Positions 12,030 to 63,156 of a stretch of DNA of 64,000 nt are shown here, in pieces (the first letter of the stretch is position 1; each line of letters begins with the position of its first letter). The notes beneath the pieces were generated by a model that was not told where the DNA came from, made no database searches, and saw nothing but the letters and a program-made list of their open reading frames with translations. Made by a program: the position numbers and the translations under genes. Source of the stretch: Macrostomum lignano (taxonomy: Eukaryota); contig NIVC01000709.1 of assembly GCA_002269645.1 (NCBI GenBank), forward strand, positions 124,001-188,000, read 5' to 3'.

Positions 12030-13187
12030 TTAAATGTTTCCTGGCTGAGACTTGAACTTATTGGGAGCCAGGAGGCTCTGTAAGTTACGTTGCCGTGTAA
12101 AAGCGGGCAGAATGCGGGAGCCTGGTTTATTTTGTAGCTTCTCAAAGTTTTTAGCAATCTCGTTGGCAAGCCAGACCGTAGATGGGTGAAAAGGAAGGAC
12201 CATTGGGATGGGTCGGAGAAGATGATTGTCAACCCTGATGTTCGTGCCTGGCGGTTTGTCAGTCCCTAGTTTTTTAATCCAGATTTCTTCCCTTAGTTCG
12301 ATTTTGTTGTTATTAGGAACATGTTCGATAGCAATGGAGACAAAGTTTGCAATCGAGTGACTGGGGGTGAGAAAGTGCTCAGACCCCGAAGTCACGACCC
12401 TCCTGTTAATATTTGACCTGTGCTGGTTCATTCTATCTCTCATTGTTCTTCTAGTCATACCTACATAGAGGATTTTCCCAGGGTGGCACTGGTTGCAGGA
12501 GATGCCATATATGATGTTCATGGAGCCACAGGACAGGCTCTGAGAGATTAAAAAACCAGAAGCCGGTTTCAGTCCCTGGGCGGAGAGAGCAGGCGGTGAG
12601 TGGGTGCAGCATTTGCAGCGGGATGACCCACAGGGATGGAACCCTTTGGGAAGCAGACCCAGATTGGTCGTTGGTCCTGCAGTCCAGTTCATAAGTATGA
12701 GGACATCCTTTTTGCAGTTTCTAAGAAAAATCTTCGAGTAGCCTAATTGCTTGAGTTCCGATTTTAAAGAATTGAAAGCATCGTTGAAAGACTTGTAGTC
12801 ATCACAGATACGAGCGTACCGAAGGATTTGGGATTTTACTACCCCCTTGAAGGTGTGTGACGGATGGAAGGACTGTCGGTGCAACAATCTATGAGTGTCT
12901 GTTTCTTTTGAAAACAGTTGTGTTGTGAAGCGGTTTTCAGCTTTCCTGATGGTCATGTCAAGGAAACTGACCTCAGTTGATGAGGAGCTGACGGTGAGTT
13001 TGATGTTGGGGTTGATTGAATTTAGGTGTACAACAAATTCTGTCAGAGTTTCAGCCGGGTGGTCCCAGTGAATGAAGATATCATCTATGTACCTAAAATA
13101 GATGTTCGGCTTATAAAGAGCAGTTCTCAGGGCAGTTTCCTCCCAGAGGCTCATGAAGAGACAGGCATAGCTGGGCGCAACTTTCAA
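12030..13187 (-). mobile_element. Penelope-like element: 5'-truncated RT plus GIY-YIG endonuclease, open 385 codons
   Basis: RT motifs APSYACLFM, YFRYIDDIF, VSFLD, thumb SFHP..KSQILRYARIC; Cys motif CGSSRCKCC; GIY-YIG IYGISC..C..YVGMT..R..QH..E..WI..GTN. Starts inside RT motif 4. A (TTTTA)n tract near 11950-11972 may be its 3' end. Confidence 0.95.
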
Positions 13188-13532: not shown

Positions 13533-16500
13533 ATTTAACACAAACTTACTCAATTTTTCAAACGTCTATCCTAACTATTCACAAGTTTTTGTTTGAGATT
13601 ACTTCAAATATAAGGATGCTTGCAAAAATAGTTAACCGGGTATTGGAATTCAGCGGGTTCAAAATCCGCGCGGGCATTGACAGCTTGTATAACAAAAGTC
13701 TGTTTGTTCTTTATAGCTTTTTCTGTAAAATTTATACAAAACTTTATTTGAAAGGACTACGTAGATTTACTGATTCTGCCTTACATCTGAATTATTATGC
13801 TACATTTTTGACATTAATTTAAAAAGTATTGCATGCTTATTAGCTAAATACTTCGTGTATTGATCTAGTTACAACTGACAAAAAATTATTGCATAGAGTT
13901 CAGCCCTACACTGTATAGATTGAGTAGTTTTTGTTTTAGTCTGTATTTTACCACTAGATTGCAACACACAACCAATTGTTTTTAGCATGTATTATTAGTA
14001 CATGTACTAGTGCGCAATCGGAATGAAAGTCCTCTAAATACAATTTAAGTCATTCTATCAATCTAAAGCGCACCCAAAAACTGTTTCTAATTTTGTGTTT
14101 GGGAATTTTCCCAGCTGAGCCAGCTCAGCAATATGCAGCCAGAATTTTTCCGTTGGTATGACAACGGGGGTAGCGCTTCCTGCCTCTTTGGAGGTGACGC
14201 ATAAAAATTGTAAGGAGCCCATACCCATGTTGCAATTATATGTTGCTTGACAAGAATTTTTCTGGTATAGTAAACCAACTGCATGCAGATATGTATTTTC
14301 TGCATGTAATTTCTAGTCGCTACACACAATGAAGGTCACTACAGCGAGAAGTTCCACTCGTGTAGTGCAGTAATTCCGCTCAGCCGTTGACAACGTACGA
14401 GACCCGTAGGCGATGACCTTCTCTGATCCGTCTAGCTGCAGTTGAGAGAGGACGCCTCCAATTCCCACTGACGAACTGCCATCCGTATCTAGTACGAACG
14501 ACGGAGCATCTGGAGCAAAGTTTGGATATGCCATAACTTGGTCGCTTGTCAACGCTTCCTTCATCTGCCGAAACGCCTTGTCTTGAGCAGGGCCCCACTG
14601 AAAGCGCGACACAGACCTTGTCAGCTCCGATAACTGCTCTGATTTGCGCGAAAAATCCGAAATGAATCGTCGGCAATAACCAACAGTTCCGAGAAACGCT
14701 TGAACATCCTTAACGGTACTTGGTGTCTGCCACTCATGAATCGCTCGGATTTTACTAGGATCGGTTGCCACGCCGGCCGCCGATACTACATGTATATGGC
14801 CCAAAAAACTCAATTCCGCACTGAGCAGCTCACATTTTTGGGTTCGGCTTCAACTTAGCCTCCAGCTAAGCCGTCGAAATATCTCGTCAACCTTTCAATG
14901 TGCTCTTCCACGGTTTTCTAATATACTAGGAAATCATCTAAATACACTAGACAAGTCTTCCACGATAGCGGATGCAGTACCGTCTGCATAATGCGGCTGA
15001 ACGTAGCAGGCCCATTAGTCACCCGAACGGCATCACCAACCATCGGAACTAGCCACTACAAAGGGAACTACGCTCGTACAAAGGCTGTCTTGTCGCGGTC
15101 CTCCAGCGCCACTGGCACCTGATGGTAACCTGACCGCAAATCTCGGCAACGAAAGAGCATCTTTAACAGTCACTTTGTTGAATCGGCGATAATTCATGCA
15201 CAACCGTAACGAATTGTCCTTCTTTCTGACGCACACAATCGGCGAGCTCCATGGAGACATAGCTTCCTCGATCTTCCCTTGCGTTGGTAGCTTAATCCAA
15301 TTGTTCGTCGACTTCGGCTCGGAGATGCGGTGGCACCTTGGTGCATGATTGATCTTGTAGTCCATGTTTCTTTCCATTGTTCACTCATTCGTCACCGTGG
15401 TTACTGCCAGATCCGTCGCGAAAACATCGCAGTTCCGCTGCATCAGCTCTTTGAACTGAGTCACCTGTTCGGTCGACAATCCGCAGTTTCTCCAACTTCT
15501 CAGGCTCTTCAGTAGATCGTCTGAGAGCTCACTCTCGTCCTTTGGTTTCTCCTCCATCATTGCAAGCGTCACTGGCTGCAGTGGATCTAAGGGGTGGTAC
15601 CACCCTACAGTATCACCTTGGTTGCTGGTGACTGGCTAGTCTGAGAAGTTTGCCAACCGAATCAGAACTCTGACGCTTTCCGACGGCATCACCAGTGACC
15701 TAGCTAGCACCACCGTACCCGCTCGCTTCTCCTTCGGACTTTCCTCGAGCACTCCTGGACTTCTTATTAGCTGACCTCTTCCGCCCTTTACCCGGAAACG
15801 CCCTGCTGCCAGCTTCTCGAACCCCGGCGGAACAACGATTCGCTCCGATGCCAGGACCCTACGCACTGTAGCTGACCGCCGATGAAAACGCAGAAGGACT
15901 GACACCCAGGATATGCAGAACATTTTCTTGAAAATCTACTTGACACCCCTGCTGCAGGAGAAAATCGGCTCCCATAAGTAACTCGTAGGAGACGAGGGGG
16001 GCCGTAGCCCAGCTGCTCTGGTGTGCCAGCGACCGAGGCTCGATTCCAAGTGCAGTCACATTAATTTGGGGCTGAATTGGAATCTCGGCTTGGCTCTGCT
16101 CGTGCAATTAACGGCCTTGAGAGCCAACCCCCCAAGGCGCAGTGAAGTGTACATGCCTAACGATAATATAAAGTTAGGGCCGCTCGCTGTACACTCCTGT
16201 GTGAGTGTGTGCCTGCGTACGCATCCGCGCGCTTGTGTGCCTGCTCAGGGGAGTCGGCGGAATGGGCAGTAATGCCTCTCGCCGGTGTGTGCCTATGTCG
16301 CTTAAAGTGCGCCAGGGTGCACACAACCCCCCTGCCTCTAATAAAAAAACTCGTAGGAGACTTACGGCGACACTAGGGGATACTTGCTTCAATTTTACTA
16401 AGGATGCTGGGGAGCTTGCAGATTGCGGTGATCAATTTATTGGGCTACCGTTGGCGGCGTTGATGGTTGATTCGTGGTGTTTCGATATGGCTGTAGAGTC

Positions 16501-16593
16501 AGACATACTACTGGTCACTTGATGGAGCAATGCTTCACTAATTACTGTCACAGCTGCACCCGAATCTACACACGCAGAAACTATACTCGTCCT
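13533..16593 (+). repeat. Segmental duplicate of 1-3058
   Basis: Same ORFs at offset 13532 (57..290 = 13589..13822). About 7 SNP or 1-bp indel differences noticed. Confidence 0.97.
15994..16347 (+). mobile_element. tRNA-derived SINE in the Gypsy protease (copy 2)
   Basis: Same as 2460-2812; TSD AACTCGTAGGAGAC at 15980-15993 and 16348-16361. Confidence 0.85.
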
Positions 16594-21895: not shown

Positions 21896-23631
21896 ATGAA
21901 AGCCAAAAACCTCGTCCTCGGTCTAGCGGTGGCGGTGGCGGCCGCTGCCGCACTGCTGGCCAACAGCGGCCTGCTGCACTCGGCGCTTCCCGGCGGAATC
22001 GAAGACCCGGAGCCGCTGCAGCGCATTCTGCCTACGTTCAACTTTGTGTTTTACACCGGCGTTGCCTCATGGATGCTGGGCGCCACTCGGAAAGTGTTCG
22101 AACCTGCCAAGTTTCTGTTGCGAATCATCAGGTCGAGCAATGCGGCCGTCAGCTTTCCTGAGCTTGAGTCTCGAATTGAGAGCATTACAAGGGTGAGCAA
22201 TGGGGCGCAGGGTAGCTCTGCGGTTAAAGTGTCTTAACTGTACGGATCGACCGTCCCTTGATTTGCGAGAAGTATTACCGTTGAAGCCATTAGAGTTAAT
22301 CCGTAATGTGACGTTGACTCCCGCACTGAAGGCTGACGGATCGCAGCTCACACTGAAGATCGATGCTCCAAACAAGCAGCAGATGAAGTCGCAGAAACCA
22401 TCGCCCGCCATCCTATTCCTGCACGGCGGAGGCTATGTGCTCAACAGCCCGGCTGAGTACAGCTACCTTACTGGGAACCTGTCCTCCAGCCTCGGCGTGC
22501 CAGTCTTCTCGCCCGACTATCGCAAGAGTCCGGTGTGGACGCATCCAGCTGCGCTGGAGGACGCCCTGGCGACGCTGCGCCACCTGCGGTCGAATGCCGA
22601 GGCTTACGGCATCGATCCCGAGCGGCTTCTGCTCGGCGGGGACAGCGCCGGCGGCCACCTCAGCATCGGCGTCACCCTGCGGCTCCTGCAGGCTGGCGAG
22701 GCCGTGCCGTCGGCCCTGCTGCTCATCTACCCTGCCACGCAGCTCGTCACTTTCTGCCTGCCCAGCCACCTGGAGAATCGATTCGACGTTTTCTTGTCCG
22801 AGTCGACGGCGTGCGCATTTCGACTGGCCTACCTGGTTGGCGACACGGCCGACGTGCCGGTGTGGAAGGCCAGCAACCACAGCAGCCCCTCCATCAGGTA
22901 GGCGGTCTGGACACATCATTTTTAGTGCTTCCCTTCTTTAAACTACAGAAGGGGGTTTTGCAGAGCTTTCAGAAGCTCAAAGCTAAACATCGTAGAGATT
23001 TCTAATCGCACTGGGAAGTGACTAGCAAGCTGCAAATATCCAAGCCTAAGCAATGCCCGCAACCATTAGACAACCATGACTGCTTTGTACCCCGAGTGTA
23101 CTTTGAGGACGCAGTCGAATGTAGACATGCAGCATTCTGTTGATGCTTGGAGCAGTTACATGTAGTTCATCGCTGCGACACCGCTCTGCCACGAAGCCCA
23201 GCATTCAGTCCCGTCAGCACTCGCATTACAGGTCGGAGTTGGCCAAGAAGTTCGGCCTGCCCCAGCTGGCCAGCCAGTGCCCCAAGGACATCGGGGGAGC
23301 CGGACTGGACTGGGCCATCAGCCGGTACGAGTTCGCCTACAGGGACTGGCTGCTGTCTCCGCTGTTCGCTCCGGACGAGTTGCTGGCGAAATTTCCACCC
23401 AGCCTCACGCAGACCTGCCAGTTTGATGTACTGCGCGACGAGGGCCGCATGTTCCACGAGCGGCTGGTGCGAGCCGGCGCCGCAGGCGGTTCCAGAAGCC
23501 ACAGGCACCGGCGCTACGCCTCAGTGCACGGCATGTACGGCTTCCTGCGGGCCGGTCACGCACCAGCCGTTGCCGCAATGGACGAAGCCAAGACTTTCGT
23601 TGCTTCGGTCCTCGGACTGGACAAAAACTAG
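21896..23631 (+). CDS. Arylacetamide deacetylase/NCEH1-like esterase (HSL family), 3 exons
   Basis: Exons about 21896-22192, about 22290-22897, and 23232-23631. Intron 1 boundaries uncertain; intron 2 is GT-AG and phase-consistent. N-terminal hydrophobic anchor, HGGG, GDSAGG, catalytic D (FDVLRDEG) and H (HGMYG). Confidence 0.9.
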
Positions 23632-24690: not shown

Positions 24691-25600
24691 TATCTGCGTT
24701 ATTAAGGAATTAAGAAAATTTAGTAAAACAAACTAACTGACAAATATTTGACAGCACAATACAGATCTGCAGTAGTATAACGCGCATTTTACTTAGAGCT
24801 AAATATTAAGCCTTGCAAAGGGAACAACAAAGCTGCTAGGCCGATTATATTTGTCCTAAAATACAGCAAAAATGGTGCTAAAGCTGCTTTCTAGTGCTAG
24901 AAAAAGAGGTGCTTACAGTTAATAAATACTCTACAGCATAAATACAGGTGTATAAATATCGTATTAACAAGTAATCATAATGAGACATGACATCCGCAAG
25001 AGAGAGTGAATGCGATGCACTGACTTCAACAGCCAGCTGCTTGAGTTGAGGGTGGAAGTTAGTGCGATATTGTTCTGTAAAAAACAGAATAAAAACTGCT
25101 AAAAAGTTCAGTGGAGACAGCTCAGAGTGAAACTTGAGATCCGCATTAACGGGAAATTTCCCTCTGAATAAAAAGAGAAAAAAAGTAAAACAAAAAATCA
25201 AACTGCAGCGTGCTGGAGTGGAAACTAATGAATTTCGCAGACATTTAAAATAATAAAACTACTACATGAACTACTCGCAGTAGGAATGACAGCGCTTGTG
25301 CGCTGAGCAGGAATTAAAAAGTGAATTATGATGGTACAGCTATGTTGCGGAAACAGATATGTACAGCTGGGATATCAGGGCATGGCCAATAAACTGGCGC
25401 CCTTGTTGTTCACAAAATTGCTGCAGAAAATAAAAAAAGCCAAATGGGAAAAAAAAACTTGAAATGTGCGCGAATTTTCGGAATACACGAGTGTTGCTGA
25501 ATAAAGAGGCTTGGCTCACCAGGTGAAGCAGGTTAAACAAGGTGGTAAAGTTAGTGGCAGTGTAAAAAGGCAACGTAAAACTGGCTTTTGTAGGCTTAAC

Positions 25601-26004
25601 AAACTGCTCAGATCTGCTCATACCAATCTGCAACCAGTGCTCAGATCTGCTCATACCCATCAGCAACCAGTGCTCAGATCTGCTCATATCCATCAGCAAC
25701 CAGTGCTCAGATCTGCTCATACCCATCAGCAACCAGTGCTCAGATGTGCTCATACCCATCAGCAACCAGTGCTCAGATCTGCTCATATCCATCAGCAACC
25801 AGTGCTCAGATCTGCTCATACCCATCAGCAACCAGTGCTCAGATCTGCTCATATCCATCAGCAACCAGTGCTCAGATCTGCTCATATCCATCAGCAACCA
25901 GTGCTCAGATCTGCTCATACCCATCAGCAACCAGTGCTCAGATCTGCTCATACCCAGCTGCAACCAGTGCTCAGATCTGCTCATACCCATCTGAAACCAG
26001 TGCT
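25601..26004. repeat. 33-bp minisatellite, about 12 copies
   Basis: Unit CAGCAACCAGTGCTCAGATCTGCTCATACCCAT; lies just downstream of the LASP stop codon. Confidence 0.95.
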
Positions 26005-26265
26005 CAACAAAAGCAGTCCATAAAATAACAGTGACACAAATACTGATAAATGTAACAATCAAAATTGAAAATTTCCAGATTCCAAATAAGCAAAAAAAAG
26101 TGGAACAAGCCAATTTGACCAGAAAAGTTGACAATGAAGGTTTTCATTTTTTCAACACTGCTCGCAAAGATTAAAGAATATAAAAATTTGTTAGCAAGTC
26201 ACTACCCCTACTTTGTCCAGGCGTATTGAGCTGGCAGTTTAGCAAAACCTGCTCAGTGAATGAGC

Positions 26266-37031: not shown

Positions 37032-40000
37032 TCACATGGCAGTCATGTTCTCCATGGCATAGTTGGGAACGCCGTTGTGGTGGTGCTGCTTCATGTGGTT
37101 GAACCGGTCGTAGTTGATGGCCACCTCCGGCAGCATCTCGGAGGCACCGATTTCTGGCACGGCGTTGTCTGTTAAAAACGAAAAGTGGAGCCAGGTTTTA
37201 TTGAACTTCGGGAGTACTGTGTCTGAGAGCTGCATTACTGCAGTATAAGTAATTTGTATTCCAGGGGATGAAAAGAAACTCAGACTGAACTGCACTAATC
37301 GTCCTTCTCACCTTCCTTCCAGCCGTGGCCGTAGGCAGTCAGAGGATAGGCCATCTCGCCGTGCTTAGGGAAATCCAGACCTGAAATTGGGAAACGTTAG
37401 GAAAAGACTCTATGAACTTTTCACGCCCTCACGACCAACTTTTATGTGCAGCGTTGAACCAGAGGCTTCAGGAAGCCTTTGAACAAAGGAAACTCTCACC
37501 TTTGATCTCGTACTCCCTGCTGACTCGGAACACCTTGAGCAGGCGAAGTATGCCGAACACGATGATGGAGACGCCGCCGCTCCACGCCGTGATGGCCAGA
37601 ACGCCGACGAGCTGCACGGCCAGGTCGAGTCCGCTCTGCTGGTCGAAGGTCATCACGATGCCCCGGCTGCGGTGCAGGAAGGCTACCGCGATGACGCCCC
37701 AGAGACCTCCGCCGTAGTGCACGGCCACCGCGTCAAGCGGGTCGTCGATCTTGAGCGCCAGCAGCAGCATGGACCAGCAGGTGTAGGAGATGGCGGCGAA
37801 GAAGCCGATGATGCAGGCGCCCCACGGATAGACGACGTCGCAGCCGGCGCAGATGGCCACCATGCCGGCCAGGCCGCCGTTGATTGTCTGCAGCAGCGAC
37901 CAGTGCGGTCCGCGGATGCGCCCGAGCAGCAGGGTGGCAAAGGCAGCGACGCTGCCGCTGAGGATCGTGTTGACCATCGCGATGGCCACGACAGAGCCGT
38001 CTCCTGAATTCGAGATCGATAGCTGGCTGCCGCCGTTGAAGGCGAAGAAGCCGAAGAACAGGATGAAGCCGCCGAGAGAGGCGAGCGGCACCGAGTGGCC
38101 GCGGATATCGAGCGGCTTCTTGGTTTCGTCGTCGAAGCGTCCGATTCGCGGGCCGAGGATGGCCGCCGCCACGAAAGCTGCGCAGCCTCCGGTGACGTGG
38201 ACGACTCCGGAGCCGGCGAAATCCTGGAGATTGGAGACATTTCATCAGGACTTTGAATTTGAATTTGAGTGGAAAGTCGTTTTTGTAGGAAAATACATAA
38301 TTTTGAGTTGCTTTAAGTTGTTTTGACTACTCAGATCCTACATTCTAGAAAGAAAGTTTGAGTCCAAGATATTATTAGGGGCAGGGAACTATGCAATCCA
38401 CTCACGTGATAGGTAGAAACCAGGCTGCCGTTCTGAGCCTTGATGCCGATCGAGAGCCAGCCAATGTCGCCGTCCCAGGCCCAGTGCGACACGATCGGGT
38501 AGACGATGCCTGCGGTGCCGGGGTGTTGTTGGCGGTGTGACTTTGCAAATAGATTCTCGCAATTGGTCTCATTTTTATTTTTGTGGCTCGTATTTTATGA
38601 AATCACTGAACAGGGCGGGGCGTATAGTCATAGCTTGAGTCAGATTTTCGAACAGTACGAATTAAAAGTGCAAAGAGCGCAACCAGAGCCGGTAAATGCA
38701 AGTCGATCCATACAGAGCTGCGTTAGTGCCACGTTACACATGTAAAGGGCTCTCGGCAACTGCTTATTCAGTGCCTCGGAAAGTTACGCTTGGTCTGGCA
38801 GCATCCGTTTCCTCTCCATGCCTTGTGATCGCTATAAACCTGGCCATCTGCCCTACTGTCTGTGCATAATTAATGCTGAAAACCGCGCTAACGACTTTAG
38901 GCGTCGCCTCCCTATGCGTCTCGTTGCCCCTCACTTCCGCCCGCTCCCACATGAAATACGCGATCGTGACTCGCGTGATGAAAACAAGCGACACTGCACT
39001 GCTCAAAAAGAAGCCAGCTCAGTAGTTATATTTGCATTAATATCTATCTACGGTATACTTCTAAGCATAATTAATATTGTTAGCGAGTCTTAGTTTATGC
39101 AGGTATGCTGAGAAAAAGATAGAAGGCATCCTTACTTCTATTTCATTGCGACAGCACAGCGCTCCTTCATGCTTTGATAGGAGCGGTGTGAGAACAGCGA
39201 GAGATAAAGAGAAAAGAATGCAGATACAGCTTTAAAATGTTGTGGGGCATAAAATCCGTTTGCCTCAGAGTGCGTTTCACGCAGAGGTCAGAAGAGTATT
39301 GCAGCAAAAACTCAAAACTTGATTGCTAGTCTAGCAAGCCGTGCAAAATGCATTGTGAAGCGGATTGAAAAGGCTCGAGTATGGAGTATGGAACTTGCTA
39401 GTTGGCCTTCCATCTCTGCCTCATCTCTCTGAGCGGCAACTTCTCTACTCTGGCGGTTCGGTCCTTCTTTTATTGTTCACTTTTAGCCAAGGCTAAGAGC
39501 TTGCAATCTGCAGCCTTTCCTGGGAAGGGGGGACGCTGCAGTCGTATTTGTTATTGCAGCGCTGGAAACTGGCGAACACGAGACCAAACCAAAAGATGGG
39601 CTGGGCAGGGGCGAGGGCTTTGTCACAATTGTGTGCCTTTTGGAAAATTTCTGTTTACTAAAGACTAAAGAATGCAACTCCGGGGCTGCTCTACATACGA
39701 TGTCTGTCTGCCCGCCTGCTTAAATATATCTGCAATGCTGGGCGGGCAGGGGGCGGTGCAATGGGTGGCGCGACCCCCTGTGCAAGTACAGCTGATACTA
39801 AAAATCCAAAGAAACGTTAAACAAAGAAGAAAAGAATTATTTTACTCCGTTGCTACTAGTCTTAACAGTCGTTTCAATCTTTGCGGGCCTTCGGTATCTG
39901 TGTCGTTTTCTTCAACAGTGACAGGGTGAAACAAGTCGCCAAGGATGTAATTTTATCTATTATGTTTAGGGAAAGCTTGGGACTTCTTGTATTACTCGCT

Positions 40001-40526
40001 GCTGTTGAATTGTTGATTGCTAATGCAGACATTTATATTTGTGTAATACTCGTAAATAGACAAACGGAAAAGAAGGCTGCTCACCCGTAATGATGAAGGA
40101 GTAGGTGATGTAAGCCAGGAACTCGCACCTCTCTGCTACAGCACCGGAAACGATCGTAGCGGCAGTGGCGGCAAAGACGAACTGGAAGAACCAGTGGGAG
40201 AACTTCGATTCGGGCAGGTAGGACATGGCAAAGTAGCCGCTGCCGCAGAACGGGTTTCCGTTCGGAGCTCCGAACGCCAGGCCGTAGCCGATTACGTAAT
40301 AGGCGATGCCGCCGATGAACGAGTCCAGGATGTTCTTGATCAGGATGTTTGTAGTATTTTTCGAACGTACGGCGCCCGCCTCCAGGAAGGCGAAGCCGCA
40401 CTGCATGAAGTACACGACAATGGCCATGGTGCACAAGAAGAAGGAGTCCAGGGATTCGTTGGTTCCCCGGATCTGCGTCTTCAGCTCCTGTAGAGTTCCG
40501 TTGAGTAATTCGGCAGACGAAGCCAT
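37032..40526 (-). CDS. Ammonium transporter (Amt/MEP family), copy A, 5 exons, 491 aa
   Basis: Exons 40526-40085, 38509-38406, 38223-37500, 37380-37312, 37168-37032, GT-AG with consistent phases. Motifs FMQCGFAFLEAGAVRSKN, FFQFVFAAT, DFAGSGVVH, GFFAFNGGS, DDPLDAVAVH; both conserved His present. Confidence 0.97.
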
Positions 40527-41784
40527 GGTGCGTCTTGCTGGTAAACAGCAAAATGAGAGTCTCGATCAGCCCAGTTCAGGTTGCAACTCGCCCTTCTACT
40601 CTGCTTTTCAGACTATTGAATTGTCGAAGCAAGTACGTTTTTTTAAATAGACAAACGCTGCAGCCATTGGTCAAGAAGCCCATGCGGCTCATACGGGAGA
40701 GGAGGGTGAAGTGAGAGGGTAGGCTGTTCAGTGTATGCAGACGCAAGCACGAGATCTGGTCGAAATAAAGCCGCGTGCAGTGAGTTGACTGCGCACACAA
40801 ACCCCCATCTCCCACCTCCGATTAATTATTAACGATCTGAGAAACCCTGTAATTATCAAGCCGCCGACTCACCAATTAAGGAGAAAGTTTAACAAATAAA
40901 ATAACTCGTAGTTATGAATTTTGTAACGTAGACCGACAGCTCCAACTCTCAGCACGATGGATGGAGGGTCGCGACTATAGCTAAGGGTGGAGCTCAATTT
41001 AGTACTTGTGCCTTGTGGCTTGTAGCTTGAGTAGCAAATCGCTTCTTACCTACTCGCTTCAGAATAGTTATACAGCTGATTCTCGATTTCACCTTGAATA
41101 ACTACCAGTACCTCCCGTGAGGCTTGTACTCGTTTGATGACTGATTTGTCCAGCGGATACTAACACCACCCTAGGAGCATTGACAGAGCGATTGCAACTT
41201 CAGCTCACTACGCTGACGCAATGACACTATGTTTTCCAGCCTAACTCAGGCGCACTGGGTCTGGGTTGGCGGTTCTCAATGTTGCTGAGTGTACTTTAGC
41301 AGCTCGATTGATTGCTCGATGCAATTTGTGTTTGTGCAAGTACCTAAGTTAGACGCAATATTCAAAGTAGCTTTAACAAAACAAAAGAAAACTGATCATT
41401 CACTTGATGCTGAAAAGTTTCATTTAGTTATGGGAAATTTATCATTTTGAGTAGCTGGTGATAGAGTTATTTTTCATTCCCTTTGCATCAAGATCGATTG
41501 ATTAAGCATAAAACATATGCAATTAAAACAAGCACATCAACATCTAATAGATGCATGTACACTCACGGACACGCACACTCCGTGGGTGTACATAAAAGAC
41601 CATAATTACTATACCTAGATGTATTTTCAGCTACTAACATGTAGCTCGTAAGCTGGTCGTTAAATTGACTTAAGCCACAAGTGACATGCGTTGTAGGGTC
41701 TTCGCGAGCAATATTTTCTCTCATATTACAGACGTGAAGAGTAGGCTAGTGTAATTAGTTAATTGAGGTAAAAAACCTGACGGG

Positions 41785-42140
41785 CAAACGTCTGGTGGGT
41801 AAACGTCCGGTGAGCAAACTCCGGTGAGCAAACTTCCGGTGAGCAAACTTACGGTGAGCAAACGTCCGGTGAGCAAACGTCCGGTGAGCAAACTTCCGGT
41901 GAGAAAACTTCCGGTGAGCAAACTTCCGGTGAGCAAACTTCCGGTGAGCAAACTTCCGGTGAGCAAACTTCCGGTGAGCAAACTTCCGGTGAGCAAACTT
42001 CCGGTGAGAAAACTTCCGGTGAGAAAACTTCCGGTGAGCAAACTTTCGGTGAGCAAACTTTCGGTGAGCAAACGTCCAGTGAGCAAACGTCCAGTGAGCA
42101 AACGTCCAGTGAGCAAACTTCCGGTGAGCAAACATCCAGC
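41785..42140. repeat. 15-bp minisatellite ACTTCCGGTGAGCAA, about 23 copies
   Basis: Read directly; source of the spurious SKLPV and TGSLL ORFs. Confidence 0.95.
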
Positions 42141-42834
42141 GGGAAAATTTCTCACAGGCAAAGACAAACGGGGTGTATCTCGCTTTGCTGTTCAAACATT
42201 ATCTTATAGATTAATCGAGAAAACTGATCTGGGTAGCTTTAATCCGTTCGACCCTCGCGCACCGCTCCTCCCACTTCATTCCTCAACCCCAGTCTGCCGT
42301 GGCGTAGCTGAGTTGCGTCACTCGCAGAGATTGAGAGACTTGCCTGCACTCTCAAAAGTGGCGACCACAGACAGAATCTTCTGTGATGGCGACTATTCGA
42401 TGATTTTTCAGAAACGAATTGACCTGGGTCGGTTCTATTAGACCCCTTTTCTTGGGGGGGGGGGCAAAGTCCCTTTATTACGCGTATCTGCAGTGTTCTC
42501 TGGACCCTGCAGGCATTCTCGCGCCTGATGCAGCTTGATGTAAAATGCGTAAGATGAAGGTGCTTAAATGAAGTTTGCTTGAGACTAGCTCGTATAACGC
42601 AAGCAGATTTGTGGAACTCGCAGTAAATAGTAAGTAATTTATTGATTGCCGGTAGTGTACATGTAAATTAGATATTGACATGACATGACTGATTTCTTTT
42701 TAGTGTCCACGCACTTTTATTTTCTGAAGATACAAGTGGAGTAGGTGCATAAAACCTTAACAAAATATAAGACCTATTATACTATTGTTCACTATCACCG
42801 AGTTAATGGTTCACTCATCGTCGAGCTTTCAAAA

Positions 42835-45007
42835 TCACATAACAGTAGCATCTTCCATGGCGTCGTTTTGAGCTCCTTTGAGCTGATGGTGGCGAGTCAT
42901 GTTATGGAAACGGTCGTAGTTGATGAGCACCTCGGGCAGCATCTCTGTGGCTCCGATCTCCGGCACAACATTATCTAAAACGATGGCAATAGGATCAGTT
43001 GTTTGCTAAACCCTGATTTGTACCGTCAGTTACAGTTAGTTTAGTTATGCCTATATCAGGGTTAGATCAGCATTGAAAGGTTTCAAATGTCACCAATGCG
43101 AGCTACGGATCAAAAGACAAATATTAAAAACTACGAGCTATGTTCAAAGCCGATTTACATTAGATGCAGGTATGGCACCTGGAGCCGAAAGCTCACTCAC
43201 CTTCTTTCCAACCATGGCCGTACGAGGTCAAAGGATAGGCCATTTCTCCATGCTTTGGAAAGTCAAGACCTGTAGAGGTTAATAGAATTGAAAATAATAG
43301 AAACTGTCTGCCAAAACACCAGCAAAACAAGCAAACTTAGTCATTCACATCCCACAAAGCTGGCAATCGAAAAACTCCAAAAATCGTCTTTACAACCAAA
43401 TTGGAATACAGATCAACCATATTCAACGAACTCCGTCCTTTGACTTAGTCTTGGTCGGAATCACACTGATTAAAACCAAAAAGTTTCATAATCAATATTA
43501 AGCTTCTCACCTTTGATCTCGTACTCCCTGCTGACTCGGAACACCTTGAGCAGGCGAAGTATGCCGAACACGATGATGGAGACGCCGCCGCTCCACGCCG
43601 TGATGGCCAGAACGCCGACGAGCTGCACGGCCAGGTCGAGTCCGCTCTGCTGGTCGAAGGTCATCACGATGCCCCGGCTGCGGTGCAGGAAGGCTACCGC
43701 GATGACGCCCCAGAGACCTCCGCCGTAGTGCACGGCCACCGCGTCAAGCGGGTCGTCGATCTTGAGCGCCAGCAGCAGCATGGACCAGCAGGTGTAGGAG
43801 ATGGCGGCGAAGAAGCCGATGATGCAGGCGCCCCACGGATAGACGACGTCGCAGCCGGCGCAGATGGCCACCATGCCGGCCAGGCCGCCGTTGATTGTCT
43901 GCAGCAGCGACCAGTGCGGTCCGCGGATGCGCCCGAGCAGCAGGGTGGCAAAGGCAGCGACGCTGCCGCTGAGGATCGTGTTGACCATCGCGATGGCCAC
44001 GACAGAGCCGTCTCCTGAATTCGAGATCGATAGCTGGCTGCCGCCGTTGAAGGCGAAGAAGCCGAAGAACAGGATGAAGCCGCCGAGAGAGGCGAGCGGC
44101 ACCGAGTGGCCGCGGATATCGAGCGGCTTCTTGGTTTCGTCGTCGAAGCGTCCGATTCGCGGGCCGAGGATGGCCGCCGCCACGAAAGCTGCGCAGCCTC
44201 CAGTGACGTGGACGACTCCGGAGCCGGCGAAATCCTGTGAGCATTCGGAGATGATGAAGTGATTCTATCAGATATTTGTTTCTCTGATTTTCAGTCAGGA
44301 TCTAATATCAGAAATTTGATTTTGTCCCAAACTGTAGGCCAACGGCAGAATTAAGCCAGATCACTCACGTGAAAAGTGGAGGCCAGAGCGCCGTTGTGGG
44401 CGGTGATGCTGACTGACAGCCAGCCAACGCCTGTGTCCCAGACCCAGTGCGACACAATGGGGTAGAGAAAGCCTGCAGTTTGATGCGTCAAGTGAGTGTT
44501 AGTTTCCTTAATTAACTTTGTCGTGGGCTACTCACTCGTTTGTGAAAAATCTCTCTGTTACTCACCTGTGATAACAAAGGAGTAGGCTATGTAGGCCTTG
44601 AAGTCACACCTCTCTGCTACGGCCCCAGAAACAATTGTTGAAGCAGTGGCGGCAAAGACGAACTGGAAGAACCAGTGGGAGAACTTCGATTCGGGCAGGT
44701 AGGACATGGCAAAGTAGCCGCTGCCGCAGAACGGGTTTCCGTTCGGAGCTCCGAACGCCAGGCCGTAACCGATTACGTAATAGGCGATGCCGCCGATGAA
44801 CGAGTCCAGGATGTTCTTGATCAGGATGTTTGTAGTATTTTTCGAACGTACGGCGCCCGCCTCCAGGAAGGCGAAGCCGCACTGCATGAAGTACACGACA
44901 ATGGCCATGGTGCACAAGAAGAAGGAGTCCAGGGATTCGTTGGTTCCCCGGATCTGCGTCTTCAGCTCCTGTAGAGTTCTGTTGAGTAATTCGGCAGACG
45001 AAGCCAT
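42835..45007 (-). CDS. Ammonium transporter (Amt/MEP family), copy B, 5 exons, 492 aa
   Basis: Exons 45007-44566, 44472-44369, 44234-43511, 43269-43201, 42974-42835 (442/104/724/69/140 bp); same intron positions and motifs as copy A. Confidence 0.97.
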
Positions 45008-46645
45008 GGTGCGTCTTGCTGGTAAACAGCAAAATGAGAGTCTCGATCAGCCCAGTTCAGGTTGTTGCTAAGCAAATCCGCTCAATTTTTCGTCTCCATG
45101 CAGTGCAGGTCTCTTTAAACGCTGCCTGAATTAGACAGAAACGGTGTGCTGCAGCCTTTGGTCAAGGTGCAGCCGCGGATCATTAAGACATGGTTGAAGG
45201 AGCAGCGTGCATGAAGTAGTTGACTGGTAGAAGAAGCACGTCGGGGATGGAAACGTCATGCAACCCCTAACCGACGAGGCCACATGCAACTAAATAGAAG
45301 AGCTGAACTGCAACTGCCCTTCCCCCAGATATGTTTGAATGTGAAGGAACAATGTGAGCTCCTAATTTGTTGGTAAGATCCTACAAGAGCTCCACATGTA
45401 TGCTCAGCAACATTGAAAAGTCGCCATCACAAAAGATTCCGTCTGTGGTCGCCACTTTTGAGAGCGCAGGTAAAATCTCTATCGAAATGGTTGGCCCGGT
45501 GATGATAGACGCTGGTCGAAAGACGCTGCTCGCTGGGGCAGAGGGTTTTTTTTGCCCACTCAAGGTTGGCATAAGTTTACAAGTACTCGCTTACATCAGA
45601 CTTAATCAGTTCACTTCGAAAGAGCTGCAGAACTGAGTGAAACTGGAACGCAGTCCATACAAGTTGTGCTGGAGCATTGGAGTTGCTAAGATTTTTGGGC
45701 CTGCACACGAGCGACAGGCAGGCAGTACCAGCCGTATTCTGTAAGAGCATGCGTTACGCAACAGTTTCGAGAAAATCGCTCAAGATGGTCGCCTCAGCTA
45801 CTGTTGCACGTATATCAATTTACACTCCATCCAGGGACCTGTCACTCCCTTGGCTGACTGGAAGGTCAGAAGAAGGTCATTTGGAGTTGCGTCTCGCTCG
45901 TGCTGTTTACCAGTGCCGCCAGTCCCTAGAGAAAGAAATTCTCACGAAGGAATGTGTCCATAATTAAAGGCCAAATGTAATTAGAGCATTCCATAGCATA
46001 AATATGAATGCAATTAAATGCGATAAATGCTGGATTTCCCTTGTCAATTCAGCCTTATGTTGGAACTTTTATAGTTGCTCTCCGTGATAAATTTGAGCAG
46101 GAACTCTCGAATAATGACTCAAGAAGATGGAGAGGAGCTGGGTGTCCCATTTGTCCCACTTCAAAGCAGGCAATGGCGAGGCCAAGTGAAAAAATACGAA
46201 ATGGCAAAAATGTACTAAAAAAGGTCAGCACCCGTACGTACAAACGCGCATTACATACGGAAGAGTGTTGCATTGCAGTCTATATAATAAACGGCAGTTT
46301 GACGAAAACACAGCGCGGCAGCCTTGAGCTCAGGCACGTGACACGCAGCAAGCAGCTCAGCTCCCAACTATTCTCATAGCTATGCTGCCACATGCATATA
46401 TGCTTGCTCTCTCTCTGCCAACAATAGCAGAAATAAAATAAGAAAGCAGCCGGTCCCGCCGTTCTTGATCGATGGCAGAGTGAGTTTCCATTGCCGGGGT
46501 TTCCCACAGCAGCTCTCAAAGCAGGCAGAGAGGATAAATGAATTGACACAATGGCCGAATGCAGTTCTCTCGGCAGGAAATGGTCATAGCTACGAGTACC
46601 TGAGATAACAGTCAACTTGAGTCTCCCAGCGCCCTCTGCTTGCCA

Positions 46646-47504
46646 CATAGGCGTAGGAACGTTTCAAAAAGTGGGGGATATAGGGGGGAGGGGGCGTACA
46701 GGGTGCACGCATTTATATGGAAAATGCACATTATCATGTACCGATTATTTTCAGAATCGGTGTTGTCAGCACTCATTTTAGCGCCGCAGGCCCCATTTTA
46801 GCGTCGCAGGCACCCATTTTAGCGCCGCAGGCACCCATTTTAGCGCCGCAGGCACTCATTTTAGCGCTCACAGGCCCCATTTTAGCGCCGCAGCCACCCA
46901 TTTTAGCGCCGCAGGCACCCATTTTAGCGCCGCAGGCACTCATTTTAGCGCCGCAGGCACCCATTTTAGCGGCGCAGGCACTCATTTTAGCGCCGCAGGC
47001 ACCCATTTTAGCGCCGCAGGCACTCATTTTAGCGCCGCAGGCACCCATTTTAGCGGCGCAGGCACTCATTTTAGCGCTCACAGGCCCCATTTTAGCGCCG
47101 CAGGCACCCATTTTAGCGCCGCAGGCACCCATTTTAGCGCCGCAGCCACCCATTTTAGCGCCGCAGCCACCCATTTTAGCGTCGCAGGCACCCATTTTAG
47201 CGCCGCAGGCACCCATTTTAGCGCCGCAGGCACCCATTTTAGCGCCGCAGGCACCCATTTTAGCGCCGCAGGCACCCATTTTAGCGCCGCAGCCACCCAT
47301 TTTAGCGTCGCAGGCACCCATTTTAGCGCCGCAGGCACCCATTTTAGCGCCACAGACGCTATGTTTTGTCACCCTGCAGCAAAATGCATTGACGCAGAGC
47401 AGCAAAAATAAAAAATAAGAGTAAAAAATAAGGAAAAAGTCTACATTTTGTGTTTAAAAAGTGGGGGGGCGGGGGCCATGGCCCCACTGCCCCCCCCCCC
47501 GTTC
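46646..47504. mobile_element. Probable MITE with an internal 21-bp array
   Basis: Left end CATAGGCGTAGGAAC..AAAAAGTGGGGG; right AAAAAGTGGGGGGG..CCCCCCGTTC, where only GTTC of the expected inverted end remains. No TSD verified. Confidence 0.45.
46785..47352. repeat. 21-bp minisatellite CCCATTTTAGCGCCGCAGGCA, about 27 copies
   Basis: Read directly. Confidence 0.95.
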
Positions 47505-48321: not shown

Positions 48322-51154
48322 TCACAGCTTGGCCTCCCGGCCGCGCACGTGGCGAGCCCGCAGCCGCCAGACGTCCTCGTAGGACAGCTTGGCGTCGGGG
48401 CCAAGACGCTGGCGGACGATTTCGTCAACCTCATCGGCGATCTTCTGCTGATGGGTGCCAGTGACGTCGATGTATTCCACGTGCGCGGAGGCGTAGTGGC
48501 AGGAGATGGCCTTACGGTAGCCCTCAGTCCGGTTCGCGCCGCTGCCGTGGATCAGCAGGGGGTGGAACAGCACCGTGTCGCCGGCGGACATCTCCAGGTA
48601 GGTCAGGGGCAGGGAGCCCGGGTCCAGGTCCACGATGCCGTGGAAGGCTTTGTTCACCTTGCCCTGTGGATTAGGGATTATCGATGAGAACTAGCCTGAT
48701 TAGAGTTTGGATTTGGGGAGGTGAATTAAGATTTGGATTAGTGGTGTCTGTAAATTTTGATTTGGATTAGCCGTGTTTATAAGACCGGGATTTGGATTAG
48801 CCGTGTTTATAAGACTGGGATTTGGATTAGCGGTGTTTTTTAAGAATGGGATTTGGATTAGGAGAACGAGTGTTTAAATGAGAACTTGGAGCATGAAAAT
48901 TTAGATTGGAGAAGAACAAAATAATCCCAGAAAAGCTTTTCAGAATCCCCAAACCTCACCCCCAATTTGGATAATCGTGCGGCAGCAGCCGGCCGTCCAG
49001 GTGCGAACCGGGCACGGCCACCAGGCAGCCGTTGGCCCGCGTGACCGGCTCCAAGGCGGTCCAGGCGCAAACCACCCTGTCCGCCGGGCGGAACGGGAAA
49101 TAGTACAGGTCCTGGTGCAGCGGGTGCCTGCTGCTCAGGGTGCCGCGGTCGGGCGGCTTGCTGATCAGCATTGTGTGCATCGCCGCGACGTCCGGCCCGA
49201 TGATGTCCACGACGTAGTCCAGCACCTGGCGGGAGCGGATATGGATTCTTCAGGAGGCGGATATGGATTCTTCAGGGTGCGGAAACGGATTCTTCAGGGA
49301 GCAGATATGGATTCTTCAGGGAACAGATATGGATTCTTCAGGGAGCAGATATGGGTTCTTCAGGGAGCAGATATGGATTCTTCAGGGGGCAGATATAAAT
49401 TCTTCAGGGAGCAGATATGAATTATTCAGGGAGCAGATATGAATTATTCAGGGAGCAGATATGAATTCTTCAGGGAGCAGATATGAATTCTTCAGGGAGC
49501 AGATATGAATTCTTCAGGGAGCAGATATGAATTCTTCAGGGGGGATATGGATTCTTCAGGGAGAGGATTTGAGTTCCCCAGGGGACAGCTAACAATCGCA
49601 CCTGCGGCAGCTGGCAGTAGGCAAAAAGCCGATCGTCATTCTGGAAGTCCTGCAGCTTGTACACCGCCCGCTCACCGCCGCCGCTGTCGTCCAAGGCGCT
49701 GACGTCGCGCATCACCGTCAGGCCTGGCGGGCGCTGGGCGCCGGCGCAGATTTCCTGGAAACGGGCGCTGCCGACCGGCGGAAAAAATAAATTGTGAAGA
49801 TTTCATAAAAGCAGCTCAGATAAGAAATAACATGTAGCGTTACAGTCCATAGTATCTGGGGCGCCAAGATGAGTATCGGGGGTGCCAAGATGAGTATCAG
49901 GGGCAACAAGATGAGCATTGGGGGTGTCAAGATGAGTATCGGGGGGGGGGGCAAGATGAGTATCGGGGGGGCAAGATGAGTATCAGGGGCAACAAAATGA
50001 GCATTGGGGAGAGGCGCCAAGATGAGCATCGGGGGTGCCAAGATGAGTATCGGGGGAGAGGGGGGGGCAAGATGAGCATCAGGAGGGGGGTGACAAGATG
50101 AGTGTGTCGGGGGGGGCAAGATGAGCATCAGGAGGCGCCAAGATGAGTATCAGGAGGGGGGGGGCAAGATGAGCATCGGGAGGCGCCAAGATGAGTATCA
50201 GGAGGGGGGGGGCAAGATGAGCATCAGGAGGCGCCAAGATGAGTATCAGGAGGGGGGGGCAAGATGAGCATCGGGAGGCGCCAAGATGAGTATCAGGAGG
50301 GGGGGGCAAGATGAGCATCGGGAGGCGCCAAGATGAGTATCAGGAGGGGGGGCAAGATGAGCATCAGGAGGCGCCAAGATGAGTATCAGGAGGGGGGGCA
50401 AGATAAGCATCGGGAGGCGCCAAGATGAGTATCAGGAGGGGGGGCAAGATGAGCATCGGGAGGCGCCAAGATGAGTATCGGGGGGGGGGGCAAGATGAGC
50501 ATCGGGAGGCGCCAAGATGAGTATCAGGAGGGGGGGGGCAAGATGAGCATCGGGAGGCGCCAAGATGAGTATCAGGAGGGGGGGGGGCAAGATGAGCATC
50601 GGGAGGCGCCAAGATGAGTATCAGGAGGGGGGGGCAAGATGAGCATCAGGAGGCGCCAAGATGAGTATCAGGAGGGGGGGGGCAAGATGAGCATCGGGGG
50701 TGCCGAGATGAGTATCTGGGGGGGGCCCAAGATGAGCATCGGGGGGAGGCGCCAAGGTGAGCATAAGGGACACCAAACATGTAGTGAAGGTAGCCAAGAT
50801 AGTTGCTAGATAAAGAAAAGATTTAACGCAGACGCCAAAATACAAGCTGGTTGTCTGAGCCTTTAAAAAGCTTGCATATTTTTAAAAGTGCAGACAAAAC
50901 CCAGGGGTTATTAAAATCGGCAGTTAGATCTGCAGCAAGGGCAGATTGATAAGGAGGATATCAGCTGACTTGGAAGCCAAGGCAAAGAAGGCAAAGTCAG
51001 GTTGCACGCACATGTAATCTCGCACGCAGTGCTCGGGCACCAGGCCTTTCACCACAATAAAGCCGTTCTTTTCGTAGAACAGCCGGTCAGATGGGCTGAG
51101 CTGCCCGCCGCCGACAGAGTATCTGAGTGGCGTCTCTGCCATGCCTGCTGGCAT
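48322..51154 (-). CDS. PHYH: Phytanoyl-CoA dioxygenase (peroxisomal), 4 recognisable exons
   Basis: Exons 51154-51012, 49767-49602, 49225-48960, 48663-48322. Motifs [37 protein letters not shown] (HxD), [26 protein letters not shown]. The exon sum is 1 nt short at the exon 3 donor; an upstream exon is possible. Confidence 0.9.
49236..49562. repeat. 22-bp minisatellite GGGAGCAGATATGGATTCTTCA in a PHYH intron
   Basis: About 15 copies, beginning about 10 nt from the exon 3 boundary. Confidence 0.93.
49858..50760. repeat. Dimeric minisatellite (CAAGATGAGCATC and CAAGATGAGTATC subunits with G-runs) in PHYH intron 1
   Basis: Alternating related subunits, about 46-48-bp higher-order unit. Confidence 0.92.
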
Positions 51155-51229
51155 GCATTCAATGCGATGGAGCCGCTCTCTGATTTATAAACTTAACACA
51201 TCTCAGGGAAAGGTTGCTGGGAGATGGAG

Positions 51230-52070
51230 ACAGGGAGTCTGAGAGGAGGGAGAGGGGGAAGGGGATTTGGGCAAAAGGGCGAAGGGAGAAAGGAGAGCCA
51301 GGGAGAGAATGATGGACAGAGAGGAGTAGGGGAGAGAGAGAGAGGGGAACGAGAGGAGATGGACAAACGCTGAGAGGAAGATGGGGAGAGGGAGTTGGGA
51401 GAGGGAGAGGGGGAGAGGGAGATGGGGAGAGGGAGATGAGGGAGAGGGAGATGAGGGAGAGGGAGATGAGGGAGAGGGAGAGGGGGAGAGGGAGATGGGG
51501 AGAGGGAGATGGGGGAGAGGGAGATGGGGAGAGCGATTAGGGAGATAGGGATAATAGAGGGAGATGAGGGACAGGGAGATGGGGAGAGGGAGATGAGGCA
51601 GAGGGACATGGGGAGAGGGAGATGAGGGAGAGGGAGATGGGGAGAGCGATTAGGGAGATAGGGATAATAGAGGGAGATGAGGGACAGGGAGATGGGGAGA
51701 GAGAGATGAGGCAGAGGGACATGGGGAGAGGGAGATGAGGGAGAGGGAGATGGGGAGAGGGAGAGGGGGAGAGGGAGATGGGGAGAGGGAGATGGGGGAG
51801 AGGGAGATGGGGAGAGGGAGATGGGGAGAGGGAGAGGGGGAGAGGGAGATGGGGGAGAGCGATTAGGGAGATAGGGATAATAGAGGGAGATGAGGGAGAG
51901 GGAGATGGGGAGAGGGAGATGGGGAGAGGGAGAGGGGGAGAGGGAGATGGGGAGAGGGAGATGGGGAGAGGGAGATGGGGAGAGCGATTAGGGAGATAGG
52001 GATAATAGAGGGAGATGAGGGACAGGGAGATAGGGAGAAGGGAGAGGGACATAGGGAGAGGGAAAGTCTG
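51230..52070. repeat. GGGAGA-rich degenerate tandem tract
   Basis: Read directly; recurring GGGAGAGGGAGAT and GCGATTAGGGAGATAGGGATAATAGAG blocks. Confidence 0.92.
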
Positions 52071-52380: not shown

Positions 52381-53095
52381 AGGAATTCCATGGATAATGA
52401 GGGGAATTCCATGGATAATGAGGGGAATTCCATGGATAATGAGGGAAATTCCATGGATAATGAGGGAAATTCCATGGATAATGAGGGGAATTCCAGGGAT
52501 AACGAGGGAAATTCCTTGGATATTGAGGTGAATTCCATGGATATTGAGGGGAATTCCATGGATATTGAGGGGAATTCCATGGATATTGAGGGGAATTCCA
52601 TGGATATTGAGGGGAATTCCATGGATATTGAGGGGAATTCCATGGATATTGAGGGGAATTCCATGGATATTGAGGGGAATTCCATGGATATTGAGGGGAA
52701 TTCCATGGATATTGAGGGGAATTCCTTGGATATTGAGGGGAATTCCATGGATATTGAGGGGAATTCCATGGATATTGAGGGGAATTCCATGGATATTGAG
52801 GGGAATTCCATGGATATTGAGGGGAATTCCATGAATATTGAGGGGAATTCCATGGATATTGAGGGGGAATTCCATGAATAATGAGAGAAATTCCATGGAT
52901 ATTGAGGGGAATTCCATGGATATTGAGGGGAATTCCATGGATATTGAGGGGAATTCCATGGATATTGAGGGGAATTCCATGGATAATGAGATAATAGATA
53001 ACAAGGGGAATTCCATGAATGAGTAGAATTCCATGGATATTCAAGGGAATTTCGTGGATGAGGGACATTCCATGGATAATGAAGTGAATTCCACT
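52381..53095. repeat. 21-bp minisatellite AATTCCATGGATATTGAGGGG, about 30 copies
   Basis: Read directly; ends about 30 nt from the METTL18 stop codon. Confidence 0.95.
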
Positions 53096-53126
53096 GATAA
53101 TGAGAATGCGATGGAATCAGAACCGG

Positions 53127-61862: not shown

Positions 61863-62256
61863 GCTTAATAGGGCCAGGTTTGAAAGTTTAGTTTCCAGTA
61901 ATCGGACTTTTCTATAGTTATAGCTTTATACGGTCTGTTGGCACTGGATGGCGATGGGCACTCCATGTTTACACAGAGTGCCATCCATGTCACCATCGCA
62001 TTGACGCAGCAGGCATCCATGTGGCTTCTCGTTAAATTTTGATGTAGCTTAGACAAGAAAGCGTTAATCGGCCTCTATTTAGCAGCTCAGAGTATCGATT
62101 ATAAACTTTTTATAAACTGATTGTCTGAGTGTCCAGGGCCAAGTCCGTGCACAGAGCTATAAATTATATTATTAGCAGAGTGGCTTATTTTGGCTGTGCG
62201 ACTATTTACCTACAGCTATGCGATGCGGAAAATATGGTTAAATCAACTGAACTTGT

Positions 62257-63156
<900 letters not shown>

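Follow-up and report, generated by a model that had tools for sequence, protein, structure and literature searches.

Two tandem genes for Amt-type ammonium transporters, called A and B here, lie in the 64,000-nt stretch of contig NIVC01000709.1 that we analysed (positions 124,001 to 188,000; hereafter the window, numbered from its first letter). Their exons form a mosaic in which two long blocks are almost identical between the copies, and the diverged exon segments differ at 20-28% of their positions. Very probably, this mosaic arose by at least two recent interlocus gene conversion events between old tandem duplicates, the history that best explains it. Both genes are on the minus strand, in direct orientation, and each has five exons, an intact frame and canonical GT-AG introns.

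37032..40526, minus strand: Amt gene A, 491 aa; exons 40526-40085, 38509-38406, 38223-37500, 37380-37312 and 37168-37032 including the stop codon
42835..45007, minus strand: Amt gene B, 492 aa; exons 45007-44566, 44472-44369, 44234-43511, 43269-43201 and 42974-42835 including the stop codon

The assignment to the Amt family is unambiguous for both proteins. Searches with the PF00909 (Ammonium_transp) profile, whose curated cut-off is 23.2 bits, gave 382 bits for A (E = 2.7e-114) and 381 bits for B (E = 7.7e-114), and both alignments covered profile positions 2-399 of 399. In phmmer searches, the solved Amt structures 8qj3, 6eu6 and 2b2f, AmtB chains and Mep2 were collinear with residues 27-436. 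The histidine motifs DFAG..VVH and VH..GG.WG, both encoded in exon 3, align to the Amt structures, and we take their conserved histidines to be the equivalents of the twin-His pore pair of AmtB. The gene models are also collinear with full-length complementary DNA (cDNA) of a related species (L001/L002), with zero indels at the exon junctions. Intron 1 measures 1575 nt in A versus 93 nt in B. No third Amt copy was found in the 64-kb window. A spacer of 2.3 kb separates A from B, part of which is occupied by a 15-bp minisatellite (GCAAACTTCCGGTGA; 41784-42137) with ~24 copies and 93% matches.

Two tracts carry the near-identity. The first comprises the leader and the beginning of exon 1 (exon 1a), where only positions 40499 and 40287 differ, and the second consists of exon 3, where a single nucleotide of 724 differs, at 38191 in A and 44202 in B. 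The identity in the second tract runs past the exon on both sides, by 3 nt at the acceptor (cag) and by 6 nt at the donor (gtgaga). Between the two tracts lies an island of diverged sequence that includes the last 77 nt of exon 1 (exon 1b), intron 1 and exon 2.

40162..40583, minus strand: conversion tract 1, copy A; 57-nt leader and the first 365 nt of the coding sequence; synonymous divergence (dS) = 0.012
44643..45064, minus strand: conversion tract 1, copy B; 2/422 differences from copy A
37494..38226, minus strand: conversion tract 2, copy A; whole exon 3 and splice consensus bases; 1/733 differences from copy B; dS = 0.005, nonsynonymous divergence (dN) = 0
43505..44237, minus strand: conversion tract 2, copy B; single difference at 44202
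38406..40161, minus strand: unconverted island in A; end of exon 1 (40085-40161), intron 1 of 1575 nt and exon 2 (38406-38509); 20/77 and 27/104 differences
44369..44642, minus strand: unconverted island in B; end of exon 1 (44566-44642), intron 1 of 93 nt and exon 2 (44369-44472)

Exon 1b differs at 26% of its positions, and exon 2 differs at 27/104 nucleotides and 13/35 amino acids. Exon 4 has 14 differences in 69 nt that change only one amino acid, and exon 5 has ~37 in 134 nt plus one codon indel. A first-pass annotation, made from the letters, had already reported the single difference in exon 3 with identity stopping at the splice signals, the 422-bp tract with its two differences, the counts for exons 2 and 4 and the divergence of exon 5; all of these were reproduced, the exon 3 run being delimited to 37494-38226.

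The borders of the tracts are abrupt. Within exon 1, divergence jumps from 0.5% to 26% with a sharpness of one base (40162|40161). Three of the four tract ends, namely both splice sites of exon 3 and the border between leader and promoter, coincide with the edge of alignable sequence, and the fourth lies inside exon 1. Smith-Waterman alignments placed all four intron pairs, as well as the 300 nt downstream of the genes, within the range of shuffled sequences (z <= 2.2), in agreement with the earlier description of the introns as unalignable. Upstream of 40583 and 45064, A and B cannot be aligned either, save for one short motif of 36 nt with the common core CTTGACCAA[T/A]GGCTGCAGC. It is the only significant local alignment within 300 nt upstream (score 20 versus a shuffled mean of 9.6, z = 8.8) and suggests that the promoter was included in the old duplication.

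40657..40692, minus strand: conserved upstream motif in the promoter region of A, core CTTGACCAATGGCTGCAGC
45148..45183, minus strand: conserved upstream motif of B, core CTTGACCAAAGGCTGCAGC

Gene B is also bracketed, almost exactly, by a 63-70-nt inverted repeat (42334-42402 and 45411-45480) whose arms are ~89-90% complementary and lie ~430 nt downstream of the B stop codon and ~400 nt upstream of its ATG. There are two copies only in the window, where the chance expectation is 0. They may be a mobile element's terminal repeats or a pair of insertions resembling miniature inverted-repeat transposable elements.

The clustering of the differences is far beyond what uniform scattering would produce. 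The 85 differences over 1486 gap-free exonic sites leave identical runs of 695, 211 and 125 sites as the longest, and the analytic bound for the 695-site run in a Sawyer-type runs test is P <= 4.5e-22. Among 100,000 permutations, no run exceeded 273 sites, and the length of the second run (211) was reached in 14/100,000. We also determined dS and dN by the Nei-Gojobori method, segment by segment. Between A and B, dS is 0.012 in exon 1a and 0.005 in exon 3, but 1.06 in exon 1b plus exon 2 (with a dN of 0.176), and it is saturated in exons 4 plus 5. The per-exon comparison proposed with the first-pass annotation hence opposes values of 0.005-0.012 in the tracts to values of at least 1 elsewhere, a contrast of roughly 100-200-fold. 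Judged by dS, both tracts would be ~1% as old as the duplication.

Comparison with other species indicates that the sites in the tracts are not frozen. The closest protein in the database search was P0001 (86% identity), followed by the Macrostomum lignano protein P0002 (72%) and then by mollusc proteins at no more than 62%. P0001 is an A-type orthologue from a related species (cDNA L001/L002; runs SRR28338163/SRR28338164, Logan transcript), which we call O. In exon 1a, O differs from A and from B by 23.6% (86/365 in both cases), versus 0.5% between A and B; in exon 3, it differs by 15.3% from A and 15.5% from B (111-112/724), versus 0.1% between the copies. The related-species comparison suggested earlier has therefore yielded, for this one A-type orthologue, distances of 15-24% from both copies where A and B are the same. 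The differences of O in the tracts are mostly synonymous. Such sites can therefore change, and the identity of A and B cannot be put down to constraint. Nor can it be put down to purifying selection on the protein, since exon 4, with 14 nucleotide differences but a single amino-acid difference, indicates that such selection leaves ~20% nucleotide divergence.

The relationships among the proteins also appear to change along the gene. We counted informative sites in amino-acid quartets, with M. lignano or Haliotis as the outgroup. In exon 3, the grouping of A with B against O and the outgroup is favoured by 9:0:0 sites, and in the exon 1a tract by 2-3:0:0. In exon 1b plus exon 2, where informative sites are few, 3-4 sites group A with O against B and the outgroup, versus 1 and 0-1 for the other two arrangements; exons 4 plus 5 have 0-2 informative sites. 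In the protein segment encoded by exon 1b and exon 2, O and A are identical at 52/61 residues, and B is identical to either of them at 42-43/61. From these few flank sites and the saturated dS, the A/B duplication appears to be about as old as the split from the O lineage, or older. Taken together, the dS contrast, the orthologue distances and the apparent switch in the quartets, which goes the way that conversion would predict, support the earlier proposal of conversion between anciently diverged tandem paralogs.

The direction of transfer may be read from base composition. The G+C content at third codon positions (GC3) is 0.66 and 0.55 in the exons specific to B and 0.79 and 0.81 in those specific to A; in the shared tracts it is 0.79 and 0.88, similar to O and to A. 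Furthermore, at both synonymous differences within the tracts A carries the O-like C and B carries T; at position 44202, for instance, the codon is ACC in A and in the orthologue and ACT in B. Although the numbers are small, they hint that A might have been the donor and B the recipient, and that B would then have acquired new mutations.

In the scenario that we favour, a gene for an Amt-type ammonium transporter would have been duplicated in tandem long ago, giving A and B, and a break in one copy would have been repaired with the other copy as the template (non-allelic gene conversion), recently and at least twice. Two blocks would have been overwritten in this way, one of 422 nt made up of the leader and the initial 365 nt of exon 1, the other consisting of the complete exon 3 (724 nt). 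Heteroduplex DNA would form only between stretches that still pair, so that the tracts would end at heterology borders and be corrected toward the donor. Extension of the heteroduplex from a break inside the block to a heterology border, followed by correction toward the donor, belongs to established models of recombination. At the fourth tract end, within exon 1, the divergence of the remaining 77 nt would already have been too great. The short exons 2 and 4, the coding sequence of exon 5 and every intron would be left out and go on diverging. Intron 1 is 1575 nt long in A and 93 nt long in B and has diverged exon sequence next to it in both directions; a single heteroduplex could therefore not have bridged the two tracts, and at least two events are needed. 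What we observe is the mosaic with its statistical significance, the contrast in dS and the distances to the orthologue; the repair mechanism, the recurrence of conversion and its direction are what we infer. The first-pass annotation had called the conversion ongoing; the two separate, equally young tracts suggest that it may be recurrent.

The same annotation had proposed that conversion is limited to blocks long enough to pair. Efficient recombination in mammalian and yeast cells requires roughly 130-250 nt of homology. The converted blocks measure 422 and 724 nt; the unconverted exons, with 104, 69 and ~136 nt, fall short of such lengths, and the 77 unconverted nt of exon 1 are contiguous with the 422-nt block. 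The proposal thus holds for exons 2, 4 and 5, but it does not cover the end of exon 1, which sits beside a long identical block, and a length threshold is therefore a plausible but incomplete refinement. The internal end in exon 1 may be read in three ways: an edge that eroded earlier blocks strand exchange, the last event happened to stop there, or selection removes conversions of the segment of residues 122-182.

Several observations weigh against the conversion scenario as we have laid it out. Block length does not account for the escape of the last 77 nt of exon 1. The level of identity, 99.5-99.9%, comes from one assembly, and the placement of the duplication before the split of A and O draws on few sites (3-4 versus 1) and on saturated dS. 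No database protein was at least 90% identical to A or B in the full-length search, and searches with the full-length protein and with the exon 1b-exon 2 region found no B-type orthologue in other species; the latter search, with the B region, returned only short distant fragments at no more than 61% identity.

Some simpler histories were rejected outright. A single unequal crossover is incompatible with diverged sequence flanking each tract on both sides. A recent whole-gene duplication and alleles assembled in tandem are both incompatible with introns and flanks that cannot be aligned, and purifying or codon constraint alone is incompatible with an orthologue that differs at synonymous sites.

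Other explanations deserve a closer look. Extreme nucleotide constraint on exon 3 and exon 1a, through codon usage or RNA structure, would dispense with conversion altogether, and exon 3 does stand out by its GC3, the highest of the segments (0.88), and by its dS to the orthologue, the lowest (0.53 versus 1.1-1.6 elsewhere). However, it is contradicted by the mostly synonymous differences that separate O from both copies in these same exons, and we give it practically no chance. It is also highly unlikely that the near-identity of exon 3 and exon 1a was created or exaggerated during assembly or polishing, with reads of one copy correcting the other. The three differences that remain are located 33, 84 and 125 nt away from the tract edges, where reads anchored in unique introns or flanks would shield true differences. 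Such pipelines are also used in this group of animals: Arrow and Pilon served to polish the two published Macrostomum assemblies from species other than M. lignano, those of M. cliftonense and M. hystrix (PMC10468722). Nevertheless, cross-mapping presupposes near-identity; it cannot turn ~25% divergence into 0.1% with a one-base boundary at 40162|40161. At 422 and 733 nt, the tracts do not reach the length of long reads and are near the fragment size of paired-end reads, so that most reads should be anchored in unique introns, and a read with a true paralog-specific base should map better to its own copy. Moreover, two 3-kb repeats of 99.77% identity are still told apart in the same assembly by 4 mismatches and 3 gaps, which indicates that near-identical repeats were not fully homogenised. 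Polishing could have erased a few differences, affecting the last percent or so of the identity, but it could not have created the mosaic.

Reverse-transcribed mRNA of the other copy might instead have served as the template, in which case the tract ends would be exon ends by construction, and in exon 3 the identity does stop at the two splice sites. Introns may have been lost in this lineage, an event for which recombination with cDNA is the classical explanation: the region encoded by the one 724-nt exon (37500-38223 in A, 43511-44234 in B) is split by two introns in M. lignano (L003 13672-16225) and by four in Haliotis rufescens (L004 12223-20511). Yet a genomic donor with unalignable introns yields the same exon-precise ends, tract 1 ends inside an exon, and zero introns have been lost between converted and neighbouring exons. 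Besides, the intron positions of M. lignano and Haliotis are 6-7 codons apart, so that loss and gain would both be possible. We regard a cDNA template as very improbable. An equally slim chance attaches to a variant in which one copy lost the introns through repair from a cDNA template and the resulting fused exon 3 was then passed to the other copy by conversion; were it true, the long convertible block would itself be a product of RNA-mediated recombination.

Selection might set the mosaic in place of block length, with conversions of exon 1b-exon 2 and of the tail purged because A and B have diverged in function, as in the model put forward for human RHD/RHCE. The sharp stop of tract 1 inside exon 1 despite 77 further exonic nucleotides would fit this idea. 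So would the fact that exon 1b and exon 2 encode one contiguous segment, residues 122-182, with 18/61 amino acids different, which aligns across the Amt motif region ahead of the conserved DFAG..VVH; the distal tail differs too. Islands of divergence maintained by selection have been described in other converted pairs (PMC3728101). On the other hand, the dN/dS ratio of the island, ~0.17, is about the same as the ratios between A and its orthologue in exon 3 (0.15) and exon 1a (0.12) and gives no sign of diversification, although with saturated dS this is a weak test. The divergence of exon 4 is almost all synonymous, which selection on the protein cannot explain, and short block length alone predicts that exons 2, 4 and 5 escape. 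Selection as the determinant of the mosaic is thus a possible but rather doubtful reading, and we see it, with similar reserve, as an addition to gene conversion rather than the main cause.

Most of the pore is homogeneous between the two copies, presumably through conversion, as the first-pass annotation had noted, while the exon 2 segment and the C-terminal tail diverge. The FQFVFAAT segment in exon 1a is identical in A and B, as are DFAG..VVH and VH..GG.WG, and all three are within the tracts. The proteins differ at 18/61 positions in residues 122-182 and at 16/68 in the part encoded by exons 4-5, where the exon 4 motif GLDFPKHGEMAYP is conserved between A and B and the differences are mostly in the distal tail. 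A and B are therefore a natural chimera pair, with the same pore core but different residues 122-182 and C-terminal tails, which could be used to probe the roles of those parts. Their history illustrates how conversion between old duplicates may shrink to the blocks that still pair, with ~100-200-fold jumps in dS within 1.5 kb of coding sequence. In practical terms, trees, dating and orthology calls for these Amt genes will vary with the exon chosen, and in exon 1a and exon 3 short reads do not allow expression measurements or variants to be attributed to one copy.

Introns at amino acids 147, 182 and 423 are common to the genes of the window, the M. lignano locus L003 and Haliotis rufescens. 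A 21-bp minisatellite (GCACCCATTTTAGCGCCGCAG, 28 copies) occupies window positions 46769-47355, ~1.8 kb upstream of B, and its unit agrees at 20/21 bases with that of an array at L003 8418-9135, which lies 0.9-1.6 kb upstream of the Amt orthologue in M. lignano. With respect to the gene, the arrays of B and L003 have opposite orientations. The unit has been kept although the synonymous sites of the Amt gene are saturated; it could be either a satellite found across the genus or an upstream element that is conserved. Nothing else was found in common between the flanks of the window genes and those of L003.

Elsewhere in the window, two direct repeats of 3.06 kb (1-3058 and 13533-16593), 13.5 kb apart, are 99.77% identical, with 4 mismatches and 3 gaps. 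An open reading frame (ORF) for a GIY-YIG nuclease (12030-13187, minus strand) lies between them, just ahead of the second copy. This arrangement could correspond to a mobile element, Penelope-like or of another type, that has long direct repeats at its termini. Two further ORFs code for an alpha/beta-hydrolase domain (Abhydrolase_3; 22200-22901, plus strand) and for the C-terminal domain of a UvrD-like helicase (25340-26134, minus strand), the latter possibly from a Helitron or Pif1-like element. Additional tandem-repeat arrays are present at 49851-50768, 51219-52063, 52381-53104 and 62254-63156, the last of which has a short period and is 96-100% self-similar.

A literature search joining ammonium transporters with gene conversion found no paper on the conversion of Amt paralogs, but comparable mosaics are known from other genes. 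Within the wider Amt/MEP/Rh superfamily, the human genes RHD and RHCE are reportedly a pair homogenised by conversion, in which a local region of high divergence was attributed to selection by Innan in 2003 (PNAS; cited in PMC3924837), the classic case of its kind. Like A and B, they are tandem paralogs converted over most of the gene with a divergent region. In contrast, the island has a low dN/dS here (0.17) and the shortness of the exons is mostly a sufficient explanation; moreover, the RH genes are inverted, whereas A and B are in direct orientation.

In Arabidopsis halleri, the mosaic divergence of the tandem HMA4 paralogs has been modelled via a success of conversion that depends on divergence (bioRxiv 10.1101/2025.10.29.685298). 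There too, tandem genes for membrane transporters have coding blocks that are kept alike while longer introns diverge. The HMA4 copies, however, are young and mostly alignable; A and B, by comparison, are old duplicates whose dS is saturated and whose introns no longer align, with two convertible blocks left, and they are known from one genome rather than from population samples. In Caenorhabditis (fog-2/ftr-1 and hsp70), conversion between nearby paralogs is mostly in exons, and the faster divergence of introns may impede it (PMC3966223); short introns are often within those tracts, whereas the tracts of A and B include none. The GOT1p1/GOT1p2 pair of Tigriopus californicus is a mosaic of low and high divergence with apparent ongoing conversion (PMC3728101), documented in several populations, in contrast with the one genome and one outgroup transcript used here. 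The A/B pair leaves the understanding of gene conversion itself unchanged, and is a clean new case of a known process, exon-restricted conversion with mosaic divergence.

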